A stretch of DNA of 64,000 nt from Octopus bimaculoides. Its lineage: Eukaryota. Both the position numbers and the translations under genes were made by a program. The DNA is taken from positions 70,150,560 through 70,214,559 of the forward strand of contig NC_068990.1 of assembly GCF_001194135.2 (NCBI RefSeq). The letters are read 5' to 3'. The notes beneath the pieces are model-generated. The model was not told where the DNA came from, searched no databases, and saw only the letters and a list, made by a program, of their open reading frames with translations. This document shows, piece after piece, positions 564-51,710 of the stretch; within the stretch, counting starts at the first letter, position 1; each line of letters begins with the position of its first letter.

Positions 564-1494
564 ATGGAAGTGGAAATTACATCTCCATCAGGTTTTTTCC
601 TGGATTTCTATAAACAAAGCACAATACCAACAACAGATTTCCTCAACAACACAAACAGCAGCCATCCAATTCGAGATGAAAAGCTTGTCAAAATTGAAAT
701 TGCTGTGTTGGGTACATGTTTCAGTCTGGCAATTATCAATAATCTTTGTGTTCTGTTGGTCCTTTTATGGCGCCGTAAAAAGATTCGTCGCATGCAACTG
801 TTTATATTGCACCTGAGTATTGCAGACCTCATAGTTGCTTTCTTTAACATTTTGCCACAGCTTATATGGGACATCACATTTCGATTTATGGCTGGTGATG
901 GCATGTGTCGCTTCATCAAATATGCTCAGATGTTTTCATTATACTTGTCTACATATATCTTAATCATGACAGCTGTTGACAGATATCGAGCAATTTGTCA
1001 TCCCCTCTCTAACCAAACTTGGACTCCATGCATGGTGTACTGTAAGATATTTATAGCTTATGCAATTGCTACCATTTTTAGTATTCCACAAGCAATCTTG
1101 TTTCAAATGCAAGAGGTAAATAAAGGAAGTGGCATTTATGACTGCTGGGTTCATTTTGAACCTGCTTGGGTCCTCACAGCTTATGCTTTATACATCTTTT
1201 TTGCTCTTTATCTCATCCCAATCTTGATTCTGCTCTTCACGTATGGTTCCATCTGCTATACAATATGGACAAAATATCGGCATGCCATTAAAGCTAAAAG
1301 AGATGCAAACATGCATTTGCAACGGAGAGTAAATAAGGGAGTAATCTTGAGAACACATACTGTGCGTGGTTTTTCCAAAGCAAAACTCAACTCTGTGAAA
1401 CTTACATTTGCTGTGATAGTCACATACATAATATGCTGGTCACCGTTTTTTGTCTCTCAGATCTGGTGGCTGTTTGATGAAACAGTTGTTGGAA
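564..1494 (+). CDS. CTR2: Cephalotocin receptor 2 (oxytocin/vasopressin receptor family GPCR), coding exon for TM1-TM6
   Basis: Class A GPCR motifs: TM2 LSIADLIVAFFNILPQLIWDITFRF (typical of OT/VP receptors), DRY in AVDRYRAICHPL, TM6 CWSPFFVSQIW. Acceptor tttcacag ends at 560, so the exon starts at 561 (GCA ATG). Phase-1 donor A|GTAAGT at 1494/1495; the ORF-track stop at 1502 is intronic. The sequence closely matches my recollection of Octopus vulgaris CTR2, which I recall starting MYQAMEV, implying a short upstream exon outside the window. Confidence 0.93.
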
Positions 1495-2411
1495 GTAAGT
1501 AACATTTTTCATTTTCTATTTATTTCCACTAATTCTAATCTTGCTTTATAATTCCAGTCACAGCTAAGATGCTTTGTCAGAATAACAATCAGTCCCTATG
1601 CTAAGTTATCACCTTACTTTACAGATGAAAGGAAATTGAATTGCAAAGATCCATAACTGAACAACACAAGGCATTTGGTTCAACACTCTACTAGTTATGC
1701 TAAACTTATAATTTTCCTTTTATATCAATTTAGATATTACACAACTCAGCAACAAAGAAACAACTTTCATAACCAAATACCAATTGCATTCAAATGCTTG
1801 TAGAATAGAAAGGCAGACAACCACTGCTAATCCTACAGCAACTTTGCTAAAGTTGGCACAGCTACTAATAAACTAGATTGTCAGTCAAAAAAAAGCAATT
1901 GCTACAGCTACTGACAACCACTCCTGCTGCTACAACAATGATCCAGCAACAATCAGAAGGAAATGAAATACAATACCATATGATTTTTTTGTAAGAAAAA
2001 CATGTGAACTTCCAGAACTGATATCATGAAAAATTAATTTGGCTTAATTTATTTCAATTTAATTTTTCTTTATTTCAGCACGACTAAATCCCCTTTTTAA
2101 AACAATTGAAACTGGTAGCATATTTTGATAGAGGTGTAAATACTTTCTCCCTTTTATCCATCATCAATTTCTCAAAACATTTTCATCTTTTTACTTTTAA
2201 TAAATGTGTGTGTGTGTGTTTGTGTCTCCTTGACTTGATAACGAGTGGTAGTTGTGTGTCACTGTCATAGAAGCGATGTCTTTCATTGCCACTGTTCTGC
2301 CACAAAAACATGTCTGGTTCTAAGAAAATGGTATCTTGCTTGGAAACAGTTAAGTGTTGACAACAGGAAGAGCATCTGACCAAAGAAAATCTACCTAAAA
2401 GAACAGTGATC

Positions 2412-4434: not shown

Positions 4435-4647
4435 NNNNNNNNNNNNNNNNNNNNNNNNNNNNNNNNNNNNNNNNNNNNNNNNNNNNNNNNNNNNNNNNNN
4501 NNNNNNNNNNNNNNNNNNNNNNNNNNNNNNNNNNNNNNNNNNNNNNNNNNNNNNNNNNNNNNNNNNNNNNNNNNNNNNNNNNNNNNNNNNNNNNNNNNNN
4601 NNNNNNNNNNNNNNNNNNNNNNNNNNNNNNNNNNNNNNNNNNNNNNN
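4435..4647. other. Assembly gap (others: 11737-12507, 14765-14892, 37770-38064)
   Basis: Runs of N. Confidence 1.
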
Positions 4648-9939: not shown

Positions 9940-12939
9940 TAATATGCTTCAACACACGAAATCACATAAAAAATCTTGCAAGCCAAATCCCAAAACAAAA
10001 TATTTATAGTTTATTTAATTTTAAAAATTAAATTATATAGAAGGACTTAATTTCAAGTTAGTTAAGTGACGCACACATTTTGTTCTACTAATTTCGAAGA
10101 AGAAAATGTCACTTTTTTTAAGCTTAAAAGTGAAGAATGATAAATTTTCTCAGCATTAGTCGAAGAGAGTAACATCATAAAATTTGTTTCCCCCCTCTGT
10201 CATCTCTGTTGGTATTACAGAATTTCCAGAAGGTGTGTATAGTCATAACACCACGTCTCTACTTCTCTGTTCACTATACTCTGTTCATCCCAAGCCCTAT
10301 ACTAAAAACATTACACCCAATAGTTCTGTCCCACAACATCAGAGTACAAGAAATCCTCACACATCGTTTTTTTTTTTTGTTTTTTGTTTTTCCTTACAAT
10401 CGTTGACTTTCTGATGTTTCAGTTACATCAATCTCGCCGGAATCAGATTGCAAAAACCATAGATTCTTACTACAGACCAGACCGCGCACACACAAATCAT
10501 CCATCCGTCCATCCATCCATGCATAAACGTACAAACACCTGTACACGAACACACACACACGTATTGGGTGATTGTTCCATTGTCACAGGTGATTGTCAAC
10601 CCTCTGTACTTCCTTGTTGTCAATGACATTTCTGACATGCCATCCATGACTATTCAATCCCATTTCTGATTTGCATGGTTTGAAGCATAGGTGACAGACA
10701 AAAGTTGTAACTTCCACTAGATCAGGTCAGTTTGTGAAATATGATCTTGTGTGAAGTGCTGTATGTCTTTTCTGACCTGAAAACGACTTGCAAAATTTTT
10801 CACATATTACACATGTTGAAGCACTTGGTTTACAAGAGAAAATGGTGCATACCACTGATTTGTTCATTGGACTTCATATGGCTGATATTCTCAGCCTTAG
10901 AAAGGAGTACACAACCAAACATTTCATATCTCATCAAGATTCTAATGATAACCCCTCAGAAACCAGCTCTTTAAGTTTTCGTGCTCAAGGTGACCCTTTT
11001 CAAAAGTTTCACAACTTTCCCTTGTGTTTTCTCCACTCAGATTTCTCAAGACTAGCTATTTCCACTTCATCACATTGACTCACAGGTACACATACATAAA
11101 CTCAACACATGATCATGATATCAGAGGCTAAGAATCTGCAAGACCTTCTCAAGATTGAAAGGATGATGATTAAAACAAGATGCATGTATGCATACATGCA
11201 TGTATGTATGTATGCATGCATGTATGCATACATGAATACATACACACATGCGTGCATACATACACGTGTACATACATGCACGCATGCATGCACACATACA
11301 CACATTACATGGAAAAATGTATGCATGAAAAGTCATATTCTTAAGATTATAAACATGGAAAAGTACAGGACAAGTTATTACACCTGTAAAAGTATAGGAC
11401 AAGCTATTACTTCTAGTAAAGTAAAGATTAAGAAACTTTTTACTTAAAATATTGCAGCAAAGAATACCAGTTCTTCTAATTTATCACTCTTTACAGTTCT
11501 CATCTTTTAAATTTAAACTGTTCAGCTAATTTGTAAGTTTGGCTAATTAGTCACTTTTTTCTGTATTTAAGGTAGTAAATTAGCCAAATTCTACTTAAAT
11601 AAGTATAGTTTTATTTGTAAACTATAATAAAATAAGTTTTAATATTCAAATTTTAATTTTAGCTGCAATATTTTAAGTCAATAGTTTCTTATTCTTTACT
11701 TTACTAGAAGTAACAGCTTGTTCTATACTTTTACAGNNNNNNNNNNNNNNNNNNNNNNNNNNNNNNNNNNNNNNNNNNNNNNNNNNNNNNNNNNNNNNNN
11801 NNNNNNNNNNNNNNNNNNNNNNNNNNNNNNNNNNNNNNNNNNNNNNNNNNNNNNNNNNNNNNNNNNNNNNNNNNNNNNNNNNNNNNNNNNNNNNNNNNNN
11901 NNNNNNNNNNNNNNNNNNNNNNNNNNNNNNNNNNNNNNNNNNNNNNNNNNNNNNNNNNNNNNNNNNNNNNNNNNNNNNNNNNNNNNNNNNNNNNNNNNNN
12001 NNNNNNNNNNNNNNNNNNNNNNNNNNNNNNNNNNNNNNNNNNNNNNNNNNNNNNNNNNNNNNNNNNNNNNNNNNNNNNNNNNNNNNNNNNNNNNNNNNNN
12101 NNNNNNNNNNNNNNNNNNNNNNNNNNNNNNNNNNNNNNNNNNNNNNNNNNNNNNNNNNNNNNNNNNNNNNNNNNNNNNNNNNNNNNNNNNNNNNNNNNNN
12201 NNNNNNNNNNNNNNNNNNNNNNNNNNNNNNNNNNNNNNNNNNNNNNNNNNNNNNNNNNNNNNNNNNNNNNNNNNNNNNNNNNNNNNNNNNNNNNNNNNNN
12301 NNNNNNNNNNNNNNNNNNNNNNNNNNNNNNNNNNNNNNNNNNNNNNNNNNNNNNNNNNNNNNNNNNNNNNNNNNNNNNNNNNNNNNNNNNNNNNNNNNNN
12401 NNNNNNNNNNNNNNNNNNNNNNNNNNNNNNNNNNNNNNNNNNNNNNNNNNNNNNNNNNNNNNNNNNNNNNNNNNNNNNNNNNNNNNNNNNNNNNNNNNNN
12501 NNNNNNNGCAAACCTATCATCAAAGACATTCCAGCCTTCAGCAAACCTTTTCTAGGGATAATCTAGGACATTACATATATACAACGGGCTTCTTTCAGTT
12601 TCTGTCGACCAAATCAACTCACAAGACTTTGGTCGGCCCAAGGTTATAGGGGAGGAGACTTGCCCAAGGTGCCACACAGTGGGACTGAACCCAGAACCAT
12701 AGTTGGGAAGCAAGCTTCTTACCACACAGGAATAAAAAATAAAAGTTTTGGTGCAGAAGGACTGTGAGGATGTGACAGGTGAGAAACCCAATTTCATATA
12801 TGGGACCCAGAATGAGTTTCTGAGACATTTGGGGGAAGAAGAAAAATATATTTTGTATAGCAGCAAATACAGTAACTTTATTTTATCAGCCTAGAAAAAA
12901 TGATAAGTAAAGCTGACACACAGTGTTGGAATACATACC

Positions 12940-14528: not shown

Positions 14529-16659
14529 ATATATTAATAAGTTCCTGGCTTTGGGTAAAAGAAAATACAAGTTAATTATGATTTCATTCAATATATTCTT
14601 TCAGATTCACACACTTATCTCAGTGGTCCTTCAGTTTTTCTAAGCCCTGTAAAAGAATTTGGAAAGTTGAGCCTCCAGTGAGGCCTTTCGTAATATCTAA
14701 AGGCCAGGAACTTTTCAGCACCCTCTTGTAGATATAGAGATGCACATTTACATGTATATATATANNNNNNNNNNNNNNNNNNNNNNNNNNNNNNNNNNNN
14801 NNNNNNNNNNNNNNNNNNNNNNNNNNNNNNNNNNNNNNNNNNNNNNNNNNNNNNNNNNNNNNNNNNNNNNNNNNNNNNNNNNNNNNNNNNNNATATATAT
14901 ATGTATATTAAACTACCTGTGACCCATTGTGTCACCAGGGAAGTCTGAGTTTCCCAGCAGTGGAGTTTTCTTTCATAGGTTTTTTCCTCTTTTCCATGTT
15001 ATTTTGCATGCATTCAATGGATATGACATTGAAATCATGAGTAAATGGCTCCTTTCCCCAGAAAAGGAAATATTTGGCTGCTATTTCTTGCATACCCTGC
15101 TACAACGTAACAGGTATTTTGGGTTCTTTATCACAAATAGCAGTTACGTGGTAGCAGGATGTGCTAGAAATAGCAGCCAAATCTTTGGAGGTGAGATACG
15201 TTGAATGCACTCGAAAGAAACCTATGGAAAAAAACTATTTCACAATGAGATTACAAACGGATCTTTTATAAAATATTCATCATATTTTTGAAGTCATTTT
15301 CACTTAAAAATATTTTGCCTATTATAATGTGTCTAATGGAAAGGTCAGAGTTTCTTCCCTTTCAGGATTAAGTTATTTTCAGAGTATTTTCCCATTATGC
15401 ACCATTTTGGGTATTCATACCTCAAAACCCTGAATCTCTCAATAACTTCTGGTCTGATTTATGCAAAACTTGTTTTATTCCATTCATATTCATATTCCAG
15501 GGCCACTTTACTTTCAAAGTGTTTTCCCATTATGCATCAGTTTGGCTGTGTAACATTGCAAGCAAACAAGATCGAACTTCACTTTTAATGTATTGTGTGT
15601 GTGTGTGCGTTGTGAATGTGCATGTATGAGTGTGTGTGTATGCATGTGGTTGACTGCGTTGACTTTGTCTTTCACTATTTTAATGTAAATAATACAGGTC
15701 CCTACCAAATACTGGGGGTTATTGTGCCAAGATTAGAAACCATTATTATTATTGAGATTCAAGAATTATTAGGGTGTTGAATAGAATGCCTTACAGTATT
15801 CCTTTTAACTCTACATTCTGAGTTCAAATCTCGTTATCATCAAGTATATTTTTCATCCCTTTAGGTATTGCTTTTATAAAGTACTAAAATAAAGAACTCG
15901 TCAAGCGCTGGGGTTGATGGAATTGACTAAACTTATCCCTTCAAAATTATTGACTTTGTGCCTAAATTAGAAAGAATAGCATATCAGACAAAATGTTCAG
16001 TGTCATTGCTTCTAGCTCTTTGTGTTTTGAGTAGTCCTGGTATTTCTTCACAATGAGATCCAACCCTTTCTATTATGCTTTATTTCTATCAACTCCTTAT
16101 TCTCTGAGCATAAAGTTTCCCCTAACCACTCAGAGTTTGAAGTCCAGCAAGCTGCATAGTGACTTGACTGGTGCTGGTGGCATGAAAAAAGCATCCAATA
16201 CACTCTGTAAAGTGATTTGTATTAAGTGGGGTATCCAACCATAGAAATCATGCTAAAGCAAATTATTGGAGCACAGTGCAGTCTTTGGGACCATCAGATC
16301 CTGTCAAACCAACCAACCCATGCCAGCATGGAGCATGGACAGTAAATGATGATAATGGTAGTAGTAGTAGTAGTAGTGGTGGTGGTGGTGGTGGTGGTGG
16401 TGGTATAGTCTATAGAAGGGATTATAACACAAGCTGTGTTCTCATAAAGCACATCAGCATATTCCAGCTATCAACTACATGTATGTAGATGTTTTATTTT
16501 AAAGGAGAAAATCATATATACAAGTTGAAATTCCTGATCAAGTATATTAGTTATTCTGTATTAAAAGAAAGACTGGAGTTTATGGTATTATTTTAATTCT
16601 GTAGTTACAATTGTTTCATTACAACATGGGAAATACATTTTATGAATATAAATATTAAT

Positions 16660-19617: not shown

Positions 19618-19963
19618 CATCATCATCATCATCGTTTAACGTCCGTTTTCCATGCTAGCATGGTTTGGACAGTTTGATCGGGGTCTGAGAAGCCAGTAGG
19701 CTGCACCAGGCTCCAGTCTAACCTGGCAGTGTTTCTACAGCTGGATGCCCTTCTGAACACCAACCACTCCATGAGTGTAGTGGGTGCTTTTTACGTGCTA
19801 CTGGCAAAGGGGCTGGAGGAGGCGGGAAACAGCCACGATCAGTTGGTGTTTTTTATGTGCCACCTGCACAGAAGCCAGTCAAGGCGGTGCTGGCAAAGGA
19901 CACGTTCGGATAGTGCTTTTTACGTGCCACTGGCATGGGTATCACAACTACAATTTCCATTTG

Positions 19964-19965
<2 letters not shown>
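19618..19965 (-). mobile_element. RTE 3'-UTR-only copy
   Basis: Homologous to 20598-20755, including atcacaactacaatttccatttgat. Confidence 0.85.
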
Positions 19966-19995
<30 letters not shown>

Positions 19996-20063
19996 ATGTA
20001 TACATATATATACATACATATATAGACATATATATAGACATATATACATACATATATATATAC

Positions 20064-20129
<66 letters not shown>

Positions 20130-20133
<4 letters not shown>

Positions 20134-20575
20134 CCGAGACCTTTGGAAATGTGCTGTGCGTGAGAAGACCCGGCAAGCCAAGTAAGATCATTGCCAGTGC
20201 CCCTGGACTGGCTCTTGTGCAGGTGGCACATGAGATGCACCATTTTGAGCGTGGCCGTTGCCAGTACCGCCTGACTGGCTCCCGTAGGATTTTCGAGCGA
20301 GATCGTTGCCAGTGCCCCTGGACTGGCTTGTGCGGGTGGCACATAAAAGACACCATTTCGAGCATGGCCATTTTCGTGCGGGTGACACGTAAAAGCACCC
20401 ACTACACTCTCTGAGTGGTTGGCGTTAGGAAGGGCATCCAGCTGTAGAAACTCTGCCAAATTAGATTGGAGCCTGGTGTTGCCATCCGGTTTCACCAGTC
20501 CTCAGTCAAATCGTCCAACCCATGCTAGCATGGAAAGCGGACGTTAAACGATGATGATGATGATGATGATGATAT
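20130..20575 (+). mobile_element. Short element carrying the RTE 3' tail with ~67-bp internal tandem units
   Basis: Ends ggacgttaaacgatgatgatg like the LINE at 20598. Similar tails at 2225-2445, 3020-3415, 13640-13890, 16165-16350, 19618-19965(-), 27358-27560(-), 27880-27985 and 54990-55150(-). Confidence 0.85.
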
Positions 20576-20597
20576 ATATATACATACATATATATAG

Positions 20598-22548
20598 CAT
20601 CATCATTGTTTAACGTCTGTTTTCCATGGTGGCATAGGTTGGAGGGTTCGACTAAGGTCTGAGAAGCCAGGAGGCTGGCAACAACCACGATCGGTTGGTG
20701 CTTTTTACATGCCACCAGCACGGGGATCACAACTACAATTTCCATTTGATTTTGATTTTGATGTACTTGACTCAATAGGTCTCCTCAAGCATGGAATGTC
20801 ACCCTACGATCCAAGGTACCTTTGAGTGGGCTGGTTATGCGACACTGGTGTAGATTACAGCTGTGAACTCACTTTATTTGTTGGGTCTTCTCAATCACAG
20901 CATACTTCCAGAGGTCTTGGTCTTTTGTCATTGCCTCTGTGAGGCCCAACGTTCGAAGGCCATGCTTCACCACCTCATCCCATGCCTTCCTGGGTCTCCC
21001 TCTACCCCGGATTCCTTCTACTGTTTGGGAGTGTCACTTCTTCACACAGCTCTCCTCATCCATCCATAGTACTCATGTACTATGGATGGATGAGGAGAGC
21101 AAACGTCTCTCTTGCACTCCACATCCGATGCTTCTTATGTCCATCATTTCTCTCATGTGTGCACACTGATATTACACATCCAGCGGATCATGCTAGCTTC
21201 ATTTCTTTCGAGCTTACACATGTCTTCAGCAGTCATGGCCCATGTTTCTCTGCCGTGAAGCATGGCAGTTCACACACATGCATTGTAGAATCTACCTTTC
21301 ACTTTGAGAGAGAGGCCCTTTGTCACTTGTAGGGGTAGAAGCTTTCTGAACTTTGCCCAGGCTATTCTCATTCTAGTGGTAACACTCTCTGAGTATCCAC
21401 CCACATGACAGACTTGGTCACCTAAGTAGAGGAAGCTATCAACTACTTCTAGTTTCTTCCCCTGGCATGTGATGGAATTTGTTTCCTGAGCATCTGTGGT
21501 GTTTATTGCCCCTGTGCATCTGCCGCACACAAAAGCTATCTTCCTTTGATGTTGCTGCACTTCTTATGTGTCTATAGCTTACATTGGGTACATCTTATGG
21601 AGGTTCTACCTATACCTTTTCTACAGATTGAGCAGGGCCACCTACCTGAAGGGGTGTGTGATGTGTTCGCCTTCCTACTTACTAGAACTTTGGTCTTTGC
21701 AACATTGTCTCTAAGGCCCTTTGATTCTAAACCTTGCTTCCACACCTGAAATTTCTTCTCTAGTTCTGGTAGTGATTCTGCTATGAGGGCCAAGTCATCA
21801 GCATAGAGGAGCTTCCAGGGGTAACCTGTCTTCAATTCCTCTGTAATTGCCTGGAGGACTATGATGAATAAAAGGGGACTGAGGGCTGATCCTTGGTAGA
21901 CCCCTACTTCTACCTGAAATTATTCACTATACTCATTGCCAACCCTAACCTTACTAACGGCATCTCCGTATAGGGCCTGTAAAGCCCTTATTAACCAATC
22001 GTCAATCCCCAGTTTCTGCATCACCCACCAGATAAGGGATAAGGCTTTCTCCAAGTCCACAAAAGCTAAGTATAGGGGTTTATCTTTGGCTATGTATTTT
22101 TCCTGAAGTTGCCGCACCAGGAACATTGCATCAGTGGTGCTTCTACCTGGCACAAAACCGAACTGCATCTCATCTAAGAAGACTCTCTCCCTACTTAGTT
22201 GGGCTATGACCCTCTCCGTGACCTTCATCACTTGATCCAGCAGTTTGATACCCCTGTAATTATTTCTGTCTAAAGCATCACCTTTACCCTTGTAGCAGTT
22301 GACTATGGTGCTGCAACACCAGTCATTGGGTATGTCTCCATCATGAACTACCTGGTTTACAATATGGGTGACTAGGCAAAAGCCCACAGTAATTCCTGAT
22401 AGGCTGGGGGGTTTTCCTGGCTTCATACCCTTAATTGCTTTATCTACCAGGGTGCTGTCTATTCGGATAGCTGGTCCCTCTATTGAGTCATTTGGCAGGC
22501 TCTCCTCCTCCCATTCATTCTCCACGTTCAGCAGTCTTTCATACCGAA
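20598..22548 (-). mobile_element. 5'-truncated RTE-clade LINE (decayed ORF2 reverse transcriptase plus 3' UTR)
   Basis: RT motifs GDALDRNNYRGIKLL, MQFGFVPGRSTTDA, FVDLEKA, LLYADDLAL, then SFLYLGD and RIAWAKF, across three frames. The 3' end is ...acgttaaacaatgatgatg. Confidence 0.92.
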
Positions 22549-23569
22549 AGGGAAGTACATTGTATATATGTATGCATGGTACATATGTGCGTGCATGTGT
22601 GTGTGTGTGTCTGTATGTATGTAGGTGCAATTACAACATCCACACTTGTTACAAAAATACACATACACACACCCAGTTGTAGCATATCCACCTAGAACTT
22701 TGTTATTCCCTGAAGCTAGATTTTCACTGCAAAATAGGAAAGAAAAAGATTGAAAATTTATTCATCGGAAGTGAATAATTTCCATGAATGAATGAATGAT
22801 TCTAAGTCAACATTGTGCAATGGACAAGAAAGAAGCTGGCCACAGATACAGTCTATGTAGTCAGTCAGTGTAGGTTAGTCAACATTTTAGCTTAGATTAA
22901 GTGATTTACTGCTAACATTATTTAATTACAAAACATAACTTTGTGATTTTGTCAGTTGAAGCAGGTTTTACTAAATCAGATGGCTTTATCACTGAGCTGT
23001 GTGCATGGGCAAACTTTTTCAAGAAGCGGGCTGCACAACTAAAAGAACTCAAGATAATTTTCATTAAACGTGCCATTCAAAAAGTCCTGCAGGCTGCAGT
23101 TTGCCAAGGACTGTGTCAAAGGTTGTTTTTATCAAATAAAAATCTTATTACAGACACTCCAATCAGCAGCACTAAAAATCATCTTTCTAGGGAATACACA
23201 AAAGGTGTGTATTGTAAGTAGATTTGTTCCAATAACAATTGTCGTTCCAAGAACAAAAAAAAAAAACAATTTATATAAACACGCACACACGTGTGTATGT
23301 GTGTGGGGTTGTCAGATAAATTGATACTTTTTTTACATTCAAAATTCTTGGATCTTTTCTGTTTGGCTGCCACTTTTCAATTTCTGTTCCAATTGATTTT
23401 ATATTTAATGTAATGATGTAGTTTTGTATGCTAATCATTGACATGAAATTCATTTTCATCATAAATCAACAAATGAAGAGTTAATAGCTTTTAAAGTTTG
23501 CAAATTTTGTGTAATTTTAGCCAATCATAAGCAACAGACACATTCATACCCGTTTCCATAGTAACAAGC

Positions 23570-35636: not shown

Positions 35637-38600
35637 CTAGAACTCTAGTCTATAAGCTGAGCAACTTGTTTCGTGATCCTGTAACTGGATTGTGCAACGG
35701 CTGGCAGAAGGGGCCACATCAATCTTCAGATCAGTCAATTGGTCGCGATGTAAACCCATCCAATGTCTTAATGTTTCATTATCGTATGTTGGAATAACTG
35801 TAACTTCCAGCTCTTTGTCTTCCCAGGTTTGTTTGGCGTCCAGAAGAGCATTTAATATTTGAGGGTTTGGCGAGAGGGCACTTAGCACATAGTAACGGGC
35901 TCGAATCCTCTTGAAGAATTCAATATCACTTGATGTTGGATCACCATGGTTAGGAATATATGTCAAGTCTACATAGAAAGTAGTGTGAGGGGGTAAAGGA
36001 GGAGCAGGTTTCGAGGCTGGAGAAGTACGGCTCCCACTAGTGGTAGAAGTCGGACGTTTGGTTGCTGACAGTTTGGTCTTTGATTCCGTTTTTAAAACAC
36101 TGCTTGTAGTCTTGATCTCTTGTTTAACTGCTGTGGAAGATAAGGGACGTGATTTTGTCAAAGGTTTCTTCTCAGCAGTTGCTGAAGATGATCTTTTATC
36201 CAAGCTAGTAGCCGAAGTCTTTGGTTTACTCTTCAGATCTGCATCCCCATTGGCCAACCTCTTCTCAGGCTTGCTGCTTGTTGCAGTCTTTCGTTCTGTT
36301 AAAGGTTTAGATTTTCCTAAAGTTGTTGGTTTCTTAGTCTCAGTCTTTTTGTTGTCAGCTAACTTTTTATCAGTGGTCTTAGAATCTAATTTTGAGTGAG
36401 TTGTTCTAGATTTCATTGTTGTTGTTGAGCTCCTTGCAGCAGTTACACCATTTGGCTTTTTCGATTCAGGTGGTGGAGGGCTAGGGAGATTCATGGGCTT
36501 CCCCCATTCATCAGCAGGTTCAAATGGTTTAGCATCAGCATTAAAGCCTTCAAAATTAGCAGCTTGTCCTCCCATATAAGAAACATTCCCTTGTTGACCA
36601 AACGGATCAAAAGACTGTTGATTACTTGGAGAAAATGGTGGTGCAAGTGGTGACAAGTTGCTGGCATTGGTATTCCAGCCAGATGTGGCAGCTGATTGTT
36701 CAGACAACTGTTTAGATGAACCATAAGATTCATCAATATCTTTTTCGTCATCAGGTGTACCACCATCAATAGAGTCAGTATCATCTCTATCTTCAAATTC
36801 TTTTTCAGCAGTTAATCCATCTTCACTAGAGAACTCACCACTGTGAGATTGATGTACATCCACAGGTTGTCCCATTGTTTTGGCTTCTCCCTCACGTTGA
36901 GGAGTCTCATCCTTTTCAAAAGCTGCTGGTATTGAAGATACATGATCTTTAGCACCAGCCATGTGTTCTACTGCTGCTGCAACATGATCTTGTTGCTCTT
37001 CAAAGTGTTGGCCTTCAGGACTTCTTTCTTTTTCATCCCAGTCCATTGCCATTTCATTAGTTTCAGGTTGGGAAGCCACTTCAGAAGAATCTTCATCTTC
37101 CTCATCATCAATTTGGTCTTCATGTATTTGCTTGTCTGCTTCATCACACTGGTCAAGGGCTGTACCACTATCAGACTGATGCATACTACCTTTTGGACCA
37201 TGGTTTTCTTTGTCTTCATCTTTTTCGTGAAATTCCATTCGTGAGGCAGCACCAAAGTCTTGTTCAGCCTCATAACCCTCAGGACTGTAACGTTCAAGTT
37301 CCTCAGTCTCACGATGCATCTCTTCGTGATTACTCTCTGGACTGATTCGATCTGACAAATGGTCATCAGATGTGCTTTCTTGTTCCTCTTGACTGTCTGC
37401 CATGTCATGCTGTTCCCTGTGACCTAAGGCTTCCTCACTTGCATGTTCCCTTTCCGGGGACTCACTTCTGGCATGCTCATCTTCATACATTGGCGACTCA
37501 GCACTAGCATGTTGCCTTTCATATTCTGGAGATTCTGTGCCAGAGTGCTCTCTTTCATACTCTGGAGATTCTGTGTCAGAGTACTCCCTCTGGTTCTCTG
37601 GAGACTCTGTGCCTCTACGCTGATTTTCAAATGTTGAAGATTCAGTAGCTGTGCACTGACCTTCAAACGAGGGAGACTCAGTGCCAGCACGTTGACCTTC
37701 AAACGAGGGAGACTCAGTGCCAGCACGTTGACCTTCAAACGAGGGAGACTCAGTGCCAGCACGTTGACCNNNNNNNNNNNNNNNNNNNNNNNNNNNNNNN
37801 NNNNNNNNNNNNNNNNNNNNNNNNNNNNNNNNNNNNNNNNNNNNNNNNNNNNNNNNNNNNNNNNNNNNNNNNNNNNNNNNNNNNNNNNNNNNNNNNNNNN
37901 NNNNNNNNNNNNNNNNNNNNNNNNNNNNNNNNNNNNNNNNNNNNNNNNNNNNNNNNNNNNNNNNNNNNNNNNNNNNNNNNNNNNNNNNNNNNNNNNNNNN
38001 NNNNNNNNNNNNNNNNNNNNNNNNNNNNNNNNNNNNNNNNNNNNNNNNNNNNNNNNNNNNNNNNCTGACCTTCAAACGAGGGAGACTCAGTGCCAGCACG
38101 CTGACCTTCAAACGAGGGAGACTCAGTGCCAGCACGCTGACCTTCAAACGAGGGAGACTCAGTGCCAGCACGCTGACCTTCAAATGAGGGAGACTCAGTG
38201 CCAGCACGCTGACCTTCAAACGAGGGAGACTCAGTACCTTTGCACTGACCTTCAAATGAGGGAGACTCAGTACCTGAGCGCTGACCTTCAAATGAGGGAG
38301 ACTCAGTACCTGAGCGCTGACCTTCAAACGAGGGAGACTCAGAACCTTTGCACTGATCTTCAACTTCAGCATCTTGCTTTTTCTCATAATCTTGAGATTC
38401 TAGTCCAGCATCATGCTTCTGGTGTTCAGGAGAGTATCTCCCAGAAGCCTCACAACTAGGCTGATCAGATGGAAAGAGATCTTGCGGTTTCTCAGACAAC
38501 AATTCTTCACATTCCGGCATTAATTGGTTCTCTTTAATCTCAGAACAATCTTCTGAGATTGAGTCATCTTTTGTTTTTTCTTCTGAAATATCATCTTGGA

Positions 38601-40850
38601 GATTCTGCAAAACCTCAGCCTGTGATGGCAAGGCTGGCTCCATCAAACTACCATACATAGATGTTGACATACAAGAATCCATGGGCAATGGAGGAGAAAG
38701 TTCTCTCTCGGGACTAATTTCAACTGGAGCAGCTGTTTCTGAAGTAATCTCACTTTCAGGTAAAGTTTTAGGTTTTGAAAGAAGGTCTGCAGTTATGTCC
38801 CTTGACTCATTTCCAGAAAACCCAAGCCTTGAATCATTATATTGAATAGGCTGGCTCTCAAGAACCAAATCAGGTTCTGGTAGTGACTCTGGCTGAACTT
38901 CTTCCATTTCATCAAACCCTTTGTCTTCAGAACCAGAGGATACAATCTTATCAGCTTCAATTGCATCATCAGAACGTTGAGCATGACTCATCATGTCATC
39001 ATAAATACCCATATCCTCCATTTGTTTCATGTTTAATCTACTGCTAAGTTGGTCATCTTCAGGCTCAGCTGTAGCATCTCTTTCCACATGAGTTGGGTCT
39101 GGCAAAGGCTCAGGTGATTGGTTGTTCATGAGACAAGGTGATGTTGCATTCATTGATTGTTCAGATTCAGCTTTCATTGAAGGATGGCCAATCAGATCTA
39201 GTAGAGGATCTGAGGCAGGGCTGGATGTAGGAGCTGCTGCAGGTGTATTGCCAAAATCTACAAGTAGATTAGAATCTTTCTGGACTAGATCAGGAGGAGA
39301 TTTTTTGACAACAGGTGCAGCTGGTTCAGAAATAGCAGGAACACCATCCAAAGGAGACTGAGCTGAAGGAGCCACTTCAGTGGGAGGCGATATTTTAGGT
39401 GAGACACTATTGCTTGATTTTGGTTTATCACCCTTTTCTTTTGCTTTGCTAGTTTTTTTATTAGTGTCATCTTTCAATCCCTTGTTGGTAGTTTTGCTAA
39501 GCGATGTCCTTGATTTCACTTCAACCCTAGCTTCACGTTTGATTGGTTCGCTCTTGCTAGCCAATGGTTTTGAAGTAGTCCTAGTAGCTTTCAATGGTGC
39601 AGATTTTTTTACTGCAGTTTTTGGGGCATTCAGATCTTTATCACAGCACTTTGGAAACTTCAACACATTTAGGGTCTTCATTTTCTCAAGACCTTCAATG
39701 ATTTTATGTTGAGGAGCATTCCCAGGGAAAAATATGCGAGTAATTTTTTCTAATGGGTCAGCTGGCCGCCAGATTAAAAGTGCACATATGGACAACATGT
39801 TTGGGAGTGGACATTGAGAACCATTCACCTGAATTGATTGTTTACTCCATTGTTGATAAAATTCCTTTAATTCTTTGCTGTCTTGGACAGGATTCAAGAT
39901 GTACATATCCAGAGATCCATGGCCAACTTTATGATAAAGATTCACTGGATCAATCTGTGGAGAAGTTGCAGGTCGAGAACAAGAGTTAACAACTTGTCTT
40001 AATTGTCGCACATAGTCAGTAATTTTATCTCCTTCATTAGAAAGATTTATCAGTAAACTATCTGCTGATGGTTTTCCGTCCAATTCTGATTCATCTTGCG
40101 AGTTCCGGTTACCCTTTGGGGCATTGAAGTAAACATGGCCTATCTCTGGGTGCACATTTTCAATGCTCTTACGGTGTAAGACTGAATTAATGCCAAAAAG
40201 GTTATCAATACCCAAGTGTGTGAGCAAGAGTGCATCAATGCGGTCAAGATGACGAGTGAAATCCCAGAAACAAGCCTTTTTGTTGTAGCCACCATTTACT
40301 AATAGATTGAAACCACTAATTCCAAACAAGGCAGAGTCTCCTTGGCAACCAGGGAACACGTACAGGGTTGGTTTGCTGAATCTGATATTACCAACAACAT
40401 CAGAAGATCGAAGCATTTCTTTTAGAGACCTACATTTCACATAATTGCACAGGTAAGTGCTAAATTGCAAAACACCAGTCAAATCAGAAAGTTTATCCTC
40501 AGGGTTCAAATTAATTTGAAGAACTTTGCTTCCAATCTTTGAGAGGTTTGCATTGTTCCATTCTCCAGTTGCAAAACAATGAATATTTAATATACCTTCC
40601 TCTTGTTGTTTTAAAGCATTCTCAACATCAGGATCCTTCAATGTTGCAGCAAAATTGCCAAAGGAAAACGGGGCATCTTGCAAGATCCATTCTCCAGAGC
40701 CATGCAAGACATGACCTGCATATATTAAGTGATGGTACTTAACAGGTGCTCCAAGGAAGTTTTTCAAAGACCTCTTCACAGTAGTTGATTGAGGTGCTAT
40801 CAATGCTTCCACAGACAAAGTGACAGAACTATAACGCAGCACTCTTTCAC
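35637..40850 (-). CDS. futsch: MAP1A/1B/futsch-like microtubule-associated protein, giant terminal coding exon (most of heavy chain plus light chain); contains a 295-N gap
   Basis: Acceptor (T)n-GCAG| at 40851/40850. Conserved MAP1 N-terminal domain (GERVLRYSS, KPTLYVFPGCQGDSALFGISGFNLLVNGG, CFWDFTRHLDRIDALLLTHLG, NLYHKVGHGSLDMYIL). Conserved C-terminal light-chain domain (FYVDLTYIP, FFKRIRARYYVLS, VTVIPTYD, DVAPSASRCTIQLQDHETSCSAYRLEF-stop). The ORFs 37750..40842 and 35637..38387 join through the gap inside a 36-bp repeat. Confidence 0.92.
37440..38400 (-). repeat. Coding 36-bp tandem repeat encoding GTESPSFEGQRA-like 12-mers
   Basis: Unit ggcactgagtctccctcgtttgaaggtcaacgtgct is near-identical on both sides of gap 37770-38064 and degenerates outward (DTESPEYEREHS, SAESPMYEDEHA). 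Confidence 0.95.
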
Positions 40851-41487
40851 CTGCAAAAAAAAAAATGCAGTACAGGTAAGACAGAACAAAAGCAAGTTAC
40901 AAATTAAATCATAGCAAAAACTTAAAAACAATCAATATATTCAAGATTATGTATTTGACAAAATACAAAAGATGACTTACACCTTCCCAGTTTGTTCTCA
41001 ATGAAATATTTAGTTCAAATAAAATAGTTACTGCTTCAAAATAAGATGTTGAGACATCATTTTCATTCAAATATTAAAACAGAGGCTAAGTAAGAACCTC
41101 TTCAAGAAAATTCCACTTTCAAACTGTAAACCAAAGAGCTACTCCCTTCCACACAAATACTAAAAAGCTTATCACTGAAGTTACCATCTACAATGATACA
41201 ATAACCTATTTGTGAAAATGACAATTATCAAGATGTTGAGTTGGCAGAATTATCAGTACACTGGGCATAATACTTTGAGGCATTTTGCCTGCCTTTATGA
41301 TCGAGTTCAAATTCTGTCAAGTTGACTTTGCCTTTCATCCTTTCAGGGTTGATCAATTAAGTACCACTTGAGCGCTGAGGTTGATATAATCAACCTATCT
41401 GCTCCCAGGAAATTGCTGACCTTGTGCCAAAATTTGAAACCAAGATGTTGAGCTGGCAGAATCATAAGCACATTGGACAAAATGCTT

Positions 41488-50891: not shown

Positions 50892-50990
50892 CATAAGGAC
50901 CTTCTTCACCCAAAGCACCTTTGTTGGCAATCTGAGAGACTTCCTCGTTTATGTCTACTCCAGCGGCTTCCACATCCCAAGTGCGAAATC
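50892..50990 (-). CDS. futsch: MAP1/futsch 99-nt internal exon (G-FRTWDVEAAGVDINEEVSQIANKGALGEEGPY-G)
   Basis: Acceptor ctgtttccag|GA and donor G|GTTAGT, phase 1/1. Homologous to the MAP1/futsch N-terminal GxxSWD...EGEE segment and joins in frame to GERVLRY. Confidence 0.9.
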
Positions 50991-51710
50991 CTGGAAACAG
51001 AAAAGGTTATAAAAATCAGTATTTCTATGAAAATAACACTTTGAAGAAATATGGCATATCATACAAACATTGGCAGACATAAAATAAAGAATATAATAGC
51101 TTAGCAAACTAGTAGTTCACTGGGCAGTATTATGATTAATCATTTGTGAATAATTGAAAAATAATATATAGTAGAGGAGCCAGAAGAAACAAATTCTGAT
51201 GATGAAAGATTGAACTAAATACGAAAAATATTGCAATTTTTCCTTTTGATGAGAAAAATGTAATAAAGCCCTGAAAACAGAACTAAACTAGAGTACAATA
51301 TTTTAAGACTAGAAGTAAGGGTAATGCCTGTGATCTCTTTGCAGGGTCTTGAAAAGTAGTGGCAGTCAAGAAGCAGAAAGGTAACTCGATTGGTATGGTA
51401 GAAAGTAACACAAAGATATCTTTAAAACTAGGTCAACAGAGCCCAACACTCAACAGGCTTCCAGTTTCCACCATCCAGAAATAATTTACACTAAAAGTAA
51501 CCTCAGCACAATCTGAAGTGTTGGTACAGGTTCAATATGACTGCTCACATCTAAACACACATGAAAAACTTATTTCATAAAGCATTAAAAATGTTCGCCT
51601 ATTTTTTAATCTCAAATTCTTTCAACATGGAAGTAAAGAAGAAAAAAAGGCAGCATTGACCAGGAATTTCACATATTAAACAAATTCTCTTTAGATTTTA
51701 GTACATGTAT

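Follow-up and report, generated by a model that had tools for sequence, protein, structure and literature searches.

It is still poorly understood how the axonal cytoskeleton retains mRNAs and their poly(A)-binding proteins, and MAP1B/futsch is known mainly because RNA-binding proteins control its translation, rather than for any association with mRNA itself. A stretch of 64,000 nucleotides from Octopus bimaculoides (NC_068990.1, positions 70,150,560 to 70,214,559; the window below) raises the question of whether a MAP1 protein could itself bind poly(A)-binding protein (PABP). An earlier reading of the letters, here called the sequence-only reading, had pointed to two tandem PAM2-like motifs, the kind of peptide bound by the MLLE domains of PABP and UBR5, in a MAP1/futsch protein encoded on the reverse strand. 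Our results give a credible, if unproven, answer: the octopod pair is a lineage-restricted PAM2 candidate, in which the first motif (motif 1) is stronger than the second (motif 2). Judged from the sequence, F10-dependent MLLE binding by at least motif 1 is a substantial possibility that falls just short of an even one. The host was assigned to octopod MAP1/futsch because its N-terminal part carries the MAP1 Pfam domains MBL_MAP1B (PF25281, 8.5e-88) and MAPB1_N (PF23415, 4e-26), and because its closest named relative, the Argonauta hians 'microtubule-associated protein futsch-like', is 83% identical across the last 376 residues. On this basis the window can be taken to hold most of one octopod MAP1/futsch gene, and the host identity given by the sequence-only reading was confirmed.

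Positions 36516-36662 of the reverse strand translate as SNLSPLAPPFSPSNQQSFDPFGQQGNVSYMGGQAANFEGFNADAKPFEP, which contains both motifs. They lie where the sequence-only reading had placed them (Table 1), 37 residues apart from start to start, and motif 2 is followed by ADEWGKPMNLPSPPPP and then by a K/S/T-rich basic stretch. The setting that had been described, a disordered region just before ADEWGKPMNLPSPPPP and the basic light-chain region, was likewise found in the translation and in an AlphaFold2 model built with 19 homologues. In this model residues 1-255 have no secondary structure except one 4-residue turn. The predicted local distance difference test score (pLDDT) stays at about 43-51 through motif 1 and the greater part of motif 2, and climbs to about 62 where motif 2 ends and the W-G element adjoins it. 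Pfam places no domain over the motif region.

The refined definition of PAM2 is --Φ-(P/V)-A--F-P, with two invariant residues, Ala7 and Phe10. Leu is the usual residue at position 3, with Pro or Phe in occasional cases; position 4 takes Asn/Ser; position 5 takes Pro, Val, or now and then Thr; position 9 favours Glu; and position 12 is usually Pro (PMC2854688). Motif 1 satisfies all of the fixed positions (Φ3, N/S4, P/V5, A7, F10, and P12). Motif 2 deviates from them at position 5 only, where it has Ala, and the corresponding P5A substitution in Paip2 cost just 5-fold in affinity (PMC2854688). The hydrophobic position 3 and Asn/Ser4 are represented by L3 and S4 in motif 1, and by F3 and N4 in motif 2 of the window and L3 and N4 in that of Argonauta, while A7, F10, and P12 are present in both motifs of both proteins. 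Position 9 is Pro in both motifs, and position 11 is Ser in motif 1 and Glu in motif 2. An acidic residue between the invariant Phe and Pro is extremely rare in PAM2 and absent from all validated motifs (Huntzinger et al., PMC3018788), and the same authors connect it with how weakly Drosophila GW182 binds MLLE. The earlier claim that motif 1 fits every key position therefore stands, whereas motif 2, said to differ by a conservative L-to-F change, departs further, with Ala5 and Glu11. Motif 1 is the stronger candidate MLLE ligand. Motif 2 is best read as a hybrid, in which an octopod-specific N-terminal half is joined to the family-wide junction element described below and which bears two disfavoured residues.

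Several statistics were used to judge the resemblance. An ELM-style PAM2 expression, which is backed by the definition in PMC2854688, matches both motifs in full and no other part of the protein. When the 1,636 residues that were read from the large exon were shuffled, there were 0.017 matches per shuffle and the probability of at least two matches was 5e-5, and shuffling the local 100 residues alone gave the same probability, 5e-5. The pair does not, by these counts, appear to be a chance pattern in the simple sense. The profile scores were lower than the expression would suggest. Under the Pfam PAM2 model PF07145, with a gathering score of 20 bits, motif 1 of the window obtained 9.6-12.3 bits (E 0.15 at 12.3) and motif 1 of Argonauta 15.6 bits, and motif 2 was not reported. 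The scan with PAM2 models proposed in the sequence-only reading was thus borne out by the expression, which matches both motifs, but not by Pfam, for which the best score of motif 1 in the window is 12.3 bits against 20 and motif 2 gives none. Calibration with known PAM2 peptides, of which Paip2 was confirmed by PDB entry 1JGN_B and TNRC6C by a 45-bit hit to PF16608, gave 42.5 bits for eRF3, 34.6 for Paip2, 34.2 for Ataxin-2, 30.1 for Paip1, 29.1 for USP10, 21.3 for Tob1, and 12.2 for the validated variant LARP4 PAM2w. Because LARP4 PAM2w scores 12.2 bits, the octopod motif scores fall within the range of validated variants, though they fail the threshold. In a reverse test, a 20-column profile from nine MAP1 motif instances was searched against 177,635 PDB sequences, and the Paip2 PAM2 peptide (1JGN_B, E 0.061) and 'superPAM2' (8SMO_B) ranked at the top. 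This test is partly circular because the instances were chosen with the PAM2 pattern, and it mainly indicates that nothing else in the PDB is more similar. A phmmer search of the PDB sequences with the 76-residue motif region returned no match.

Conservation was assessed between two octopods, the Octopus of the window and Argonauta hians. At the places of motifs 1 and 2 Argonauta has SNLSPLAPPFAPS and DGLNADAKPFEPA, and its motif 2, DGLNADAKPFEP, has the canonical Leu at position 3. Motif 1 is identical at 12 of 13 residues, and the runs ASNLSPLAPPF and NADAKPFEPADEWGKPMNLPSPPPP around the motifs are conserved in both octopods. Divergence is seen in the linker that separates the motifs, where about 7 of 19 residues (about 37%) are identical, and the disordered segment as a whole is 64% identical. 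Since 11% and 24% of 13-mers reach the conservation of motifs 1 and 2, respectively, and only one other octopod was compared, this test is mildly supportive. Searching with the 376-residue C-terminal query returned matches of at most 622 residues and at most 56% identity, as the search appears to favour proteins no more than about 1.7 times as long as the query and so missed the full-length Argonauta protein; with the 122-residue motif region as query no homologue was returned under the same length bias, up to about 1.7 times the query. A profile search with the C-terminal domain gave fragments of at most 203 residues, including bird and fish MAP1A/B tails of about 150 residues.

An exhaustive search among 1.84 billion representatives provided the best 150 MAP1 proteins, and motif statistics were taken over 181 MAP1 representatives. 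No vertebrate was recognisable among the named entries of the best 150. The ELM-style pattern found no PAM2 match in the molluscs Gigantopelta, Haliotis, Sinanodonta, Pecten, and Liolophura (gastropods, bivalves, and a chiton) or in the nemertean Tubulanus, and the five molluscs have Asn-Pro-Phe (NPF) motifs in the corresponding stretch. The check on conservation that had been set beforehand was therefore answered in two ways: the motifs are kept among octopods but not among molluscs, which have NPF instead. By contrast with these negatives, the Priapulus caudatus MAP1B-like protein (XP_014678495.1) has three tandem matches within residues 1244-1315, namely PTLNPNADTFVPP, QRLNPEADPFLLP, and ASLNPFASAFIPT. 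They sit directly upstream of DPTSDWEPMGLPTPPP, the same place as the octopod pair, and the first of them, LNPNADTFVPP, exceeds the Pfam PAM2 threshold at 21.0 bits. Two other spiralians have near-matches in the corresponding place, TNPFAEPFKP and LDPLAEPFMP, which agree at five of six positions. Over the 181 sequences, 0.21 matches were expected in the 120 residues that precede the junction and five were observed, all in Argonauta and Priapulus (P = 2.7e-6 by match, 0.019 by protein), and no further match was found elsewhere in the 305,000 residues of these representatives. Taken on its own, the Priapulus triplet is a better PAM2 candidate than the octopod pair. The feature appears to be limited to octopods (as far as seen) and Priapulus, and is not a conserved property of molluscan MAP1. 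Since the groups named above lack a match, it is either lineage-restricted or has arisen twice.

The comparison also revealed what the rest of the family carries at this place. Nearly every protostome MAP1 representative has a junction element immediately ahead of the basic region. In spiralians it follows the consensus given in Table 1, and the insect version, DPIxSWGKPLGLPSPAPP, is often doubled. No published description of the element was found, and it appears to be previously undescribed. The F10, E11, and P12 of motif 2 align with the F-D-P of this element in other MAP1 proteins. Upstream of the element, 54 relatives with an FDP-type junction together have 61 NPF motifs in their 150-residue stretches, which align with about 36560-36700 (-) of the window, and 34 of the 54 have at least one. 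The density there is 7.5 per 1000 residues versus 0.05 per 1000 elsewhere (3 in 57,000 residues), an enrichment of about 140-fold. In spiralian MAP1 the NPF is often followed by an acidic residue or Ala. This enrichment suggests an undescribed EH-domain (endocytic or EHD) link for spiralian MAP1.

The octopod sequence APPF[S/A]PS.QQSFDPF can be aligned on the gastropod NPFD.LDQQG.NPF; the two share the QQ and an F-to-F spacing of 11 residues. The first NPF position reads L-S-P-L-A-P-P-F-S-P in octopods, and [L/F]-N-A-D-A-K-P stands upstream of F-E-P-x-x-x-W-G. No NPF was found in the MAP1 read from the window, by count in the C-terminal part and by inspection in the N-terminal translation, or in the whole Argonauta protein. 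Motif 1 was also considered as an NPF (EH-domain) motif, and this was ruled out as the Asn is absent. Because the Asn of every NPF is lost, EH-domain binding would not be retained in octopods. From these alignments, the stretch before the light chain in non-arthropod protostome MAP1 reads as a disordered cluster of short Phe-centred motifs, several NPF followed by the junction element. Octopods appear to have remodelled the NPF cluster into a PAM2-like and DPF arrangement, in which L/F3, N/S4, and A7 would be octopod-specific additions. The segment is best described as a rapidly evolving motif cluster, with NPF in most spiralians and PAM2-like motifs in octopods and Priapulus.

The position of this cluster recalls the processing of MAP1 into heavy and light chains. 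In human MAP1B, calpain-10 cuts at Ser2218|Met2219, and LC1 begins with MVDPEAL, next to its microtubule-binding domain; the uncut fragment 2140-2343 does not bind microtubules while the cut fragment 2219-2343 does (PMC6233169). In these sources, MAP1 cleavage is described from mammals and Drosophila only (PMC6233169; Zou et al., 2008, as cited in PMC4977824). By analogy, the protostome junction element can be regarded as the positional counterpart of the mammalian MAP1B cleavage site and is probably the neighbourhood of heavy/light-chain cleavage, for which it may serve as a recognition or cleavage module. Two alignments can be drawn. If MVDP is aligned to xFDP, the cut would fall inside motif 2, and if it is aligned to the M-x-x-P of PMGLP, the cut would leave both motifs at the C-terminus of the heavy chain. 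It is thus reasonable to suppose, as the sequence-only reading did, that cleavage would matter for the motifs. Motif 2 would adjoin the processing site or lie across it, and if the motifs are genuine, cutting of the precursor could act as a switch for a PABP/UBR5 link, with one site lost or exposed on release of the light chain.

Among known PAM2 proteins, the closest to motif 1 is the peptide of Paip1, which we take to be KLSVNAPEFYPS and which shares L3, S4, A7, P8, F10, P12, and S13 with it. Similarly, the eRF3 PAM2-N, presumably QLNVNAKPFVPN, shares L3, N4, A7, K8, P9, F10, and P12 with motif 2 of Argonauta, LNADAKPFEP. The motifs of eRF3 and Tob are paired, as in octopod MAP1. The octopod motifs differ from Paip1 and eRF3 in having Pro9 in both and Ala5 and Glu11 in motif 2, they obtain 12-16 bits or nothing under PF07145, and they occur in a protein of the cytoskeleton instead of a factor for translation or mRNA decay. 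In GW182/TNRC6, whose PAM2 we take to be SSINWPPEFHPGVPWKG (the TNRC6C peptide being the one confirmed above), the F-x-P-x-x-x-W spacing is the same, with FHPGVPW against FEPADEW in MAP1. However, MAP1 has an acidic residue between F and P, as blamed for the weak binding of Drosophila GW182 (PMC3018788). The FDPxxxWG element was tried as a GW182-type PAM2 and rejected: the spacing matches, but a 74-residue fragment gave no PF16608 hit and position 11 is Asp/Glu, so the idea is weak.

LARP4/LARP4B PAM2w and other variant PAM2 motifs deviate from the consensus yet bind MLLE (PMC7356810). LARP4 resembles the octopod motifs in deviating from the consensus and lying below the Pfam cut-off, and it differs in having Trp in place of F10, a residue retained by the octopod motifs, whose departures are at positions 9 and 11. 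In Ustilago maydis, Upa1 and Upa2 recruit Pab1 and Rrm4 through PAM2 and PAM2-like motifs, and the dissociation constants are 5-22 µM (PMC9249222). Here PAM2 motifs on a transport scaffold link MLLE proteins and mRNAs to microtubule-based movement, as the sequence-only reading proposed for MAP1; these scaffolds are on endosomes, not on the microtubule lattice, and have no sequence relation to MAP1. Mutation of the Pab1-binding PAM2 motifs in Ustilago did not stop mRNA transport (PMC9249222). Finally, the junctions of mammalian MAP1B, MAP1A, and MAP1S occupy the same position, directly before the basic light-chain microtubule-binding region, but no PAM2 has been reported there.

The PAM2 reading is supported by the sequence fit, the conservation in octopods, the recurrence in Priapulus, and the predicted disorder, whereas the binding, the partner, and any role in mRNA transport are inferred. 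A number of observations weigh against it. Motif 2 has at position 11 a class of residue absent from validated PAM2 motifs, and its F-E-P would be kept regardless of MLLE binding because it is part of the junction element. Both motifs have Pro9, not the preferred Glu, although the eRF3 PAM2-N, as we take its peptide to be, likewise has Pro at this position. Neither octopod motif reaches the Pfam gathering score, and the model gives no hit for motif 2. Motif 1 is only in the top 11% of 13-mers by conservation and motif 2 in the top 24%, and motifs made of F, P, N, S, and A are naturally abundant in the stretch. PAM2 matches are absent from other molluscs, a nemertean, most annelid-like sequences, and all arthropods examined. 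In addition, mRNA transport in Ustilago survived PAM2 mutation, which cautions against assuming a strong phenotype.

Many of these points would be expected if the resemblance were coincidental and the motifs were octopod versions of the Phe-centred cluster of the family (NPF/DPF/FDP...WG), without MLLE binding. The cluster might then act in protease recognition at the junction, in masking the microtubule-binding region of the light chain, or with endocytic-type partners. Such a coincidence is a serious contender that we think somewhat unlikely. It would account for the residue-for-residue alignment of octopods and gastropods with its 11-residue F-to-F spacing and QQ, for the about 140-fold enrichment of NPF in the 150-residue stretch of the 54 relatives, for the identity of the motif 2 F-E-P with the family-wide F-D-P, and for the sub-threshold Pfam scores and Glu11, and it agrees with the unprocessed pre-junction segment of mammals, which blocks LC1 microtubule binding and is cleaved at the junction (PMC6233169). 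However, octopods have lost the Asn of every NPF, so that EH-domain binding is not what was retained, and L/F3, N/S4, and A7 lie outside the family elements, yet occur at both sites and are kept in Argonauta. The probability of two matches (5e-5) and the three independent matches in Priapulus also speak against coincidence.

A further alternative is that the motifs have no specific function, being chance products of a low-complexity F/P/S/N-rich linker that are shared through the low divergence between Octopus and Argonauta. This is improbable in our view. The background identity of 64%, the 11-24% of 13-mers that are as conserved, and the comparison of just two octopods are consistent with it, but the linker has diverged (about 7 of 19 residues identical) while the motif cores were kept, a double match is very unlikely by chance, and there are same-position matches in Priapulus and near-matches in two spiralians. 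If the motifs are indeed MLLE ligands, their main partner could be the HECT ubiquitin ligase UBR5, with a function in MAP1 turnover or ubiquitination, not in mRNA tethering. The MLLE of UBR5 binds PAM2 peptides at micromolar affinity and discriminates between variants (PMC9249222), and the sequence evidence for this alternative is the same as for the PABP link. On the other hand, the sequence gives no preference for UBR5 over PABP and PABP is far more abundant, and we regard UBR5 as the main partner as quite improbable.

According to the PAM2 reading, motif 1 would most likely be a ligand for the MLLE domain in cytoplasmic poly(A)-binding protein, at the micromolar affinity typical of PAM2 peptides, and motif 2 would add a weaker second site, or would be available in the uncleaved precursor only. 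Processing would leave the motifs close to the heavy-chain C-terminus or right at it, and a microtubule-bound MAP1 could then hold PABP-coated mRNAs. Occupation of the single MLLE pocket by MAP1 could also bring it into competition with deadenylase adaptors and termination factors. That the motifs really serve to hold PABP-bound mRNAs, or UBR5, on MAP1 is rather unlikely in our judgement, and it is by extension only that messenger ribonucleoproteins might be tethered to microtubules for axonal transport, as the sequence-only reading proposed. In a literature search, no paper was found to connect MAP1, MAP1B, or futsch with PAM2 or MLLE, in agreement with the earlier remark that none was known in MAP1A/1B/futsch. 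No paper combining PAM2 and Drosophila MAP205 was found either, and the accompanying remark on a PAM2 in MAP205 could not be confirmed.

The layout of the gene is given in Table 1. The pLDDT of the C-terminal domain is about 82-97 over most of its length and below 50 over the last 16 or so residues. The acidic island upstream of the motifs is partly conserved or recognisable in gastropods and other spiralians (TDSIDGGTPDD.KDIDES; DRDSLE+E in others). In the same exon, a 36-bp tandem repeat at 37515-38342 (-) encodes 12-residue ESPSFEGQRxGT units, of which Argonauta has more copies.

Table 1. Features of the MAP1/futsch gene, in positions of the window
Feature	Position	Strand	Evidence and remarks
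Folded C-terminal MAP1 light-chain domain, ending AYRLEF + stop codon	35637..35987	-	Homologues 54-83% identical
Large MAP1/futsch coding exon	35637..40854	-	Open reading frames, Pfam domains, tblastn with Argonauta protein residues 79-1699; 5' limit approximate
Basic K/S/T-rich region, resembles light-chain microtubule-binding part	35988..36467	-	Translation; 71% identical to Argonauta; disordered in AlphaFold2 model
Family-wide junction element FEPADEWGKPMNLPSPPPP	36468..36524	-	Consensus FDPxxxWGxPMGLPSPPPP; directly before basic region
PAM2-like motif 2 EGFNADAKPFEP, F3 N4 A5 A7 F10 E11 P12	36516..36551	-	Translation, regular-expression match, no Pfam PAM2 report
SFDPF, DPF element between motifs	36600..36614	-	Conserved in Argonauta; aligns with second NPF of gastropod MAP1
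PAM2-like motif 1 SNLSPLAPPFSP, L3 S4 P5 A7 F10 P12	36627..36662	-	Translation, regular-expression match, Pfam PAM2 sub-threshold
Acidic island DRDDTDSIDGGTPDDEKDIDES, upstream of motifs	36726..36791	-	22/22 residues identical in Argonauta
Assembly gap (run of N) inside ESPSFEGQRxGT repeat, same large exon	37770..38064	.	Open reading frames, tblastn
Small upstream MAP1 exon	50893..51000	-	tblastn, 86% identity to Argonauta protein residues 35-70

Elsewhere in the window, an open reading frame of 312 residues at 564-1502 (+) has a rhodopsin-family G-protein-coupled receptor domain (7tm_1, 4.7e-39), and its LPQL.WDIT.RF and DRY.AICHPL stretches are suggestive of vasopressin/oxytocin-type receptors. 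A reverse transcriptase fragment at 21920-22630 (-) (RVT_1, 4.8e-08) is probably a decayed non-LTR retrotransposon. Positions 19853-20495 are microsatellite-rich, with TG/TA-type repeats and reading frames of the type YIYIY/CVCVCV, and the local GC content peaks at 45% at 20001-22000. Three more assembly gaps (runs of N) are located at 4435-4647, 11737-12507, and 14765-14892.

The comparative result, a motif cluster before the light chain and a pan-protostome junction element, holds irrespective of MLLE binding. The broader proposal, which we hold to be doubtful, is that MAP1/futsch of several protostome lineages (octopods, priapulids, and some annelids) carries genuine PAM2 motifs at the junction that link the microtubule lattice to PABP-coated mRNAs or UBR5. 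If true, MAP1 would be the first structural microtubule-associated protein shown to be PABP-interacting, and a cytoskeletal protein would join the small set of PABP-interacting proteins, with competition for the single MLLE pocket as a prediction. Local protein synthesis has classically been studied in cephalopod axons, which would be a natural place for testing a MAP1-PABP link.

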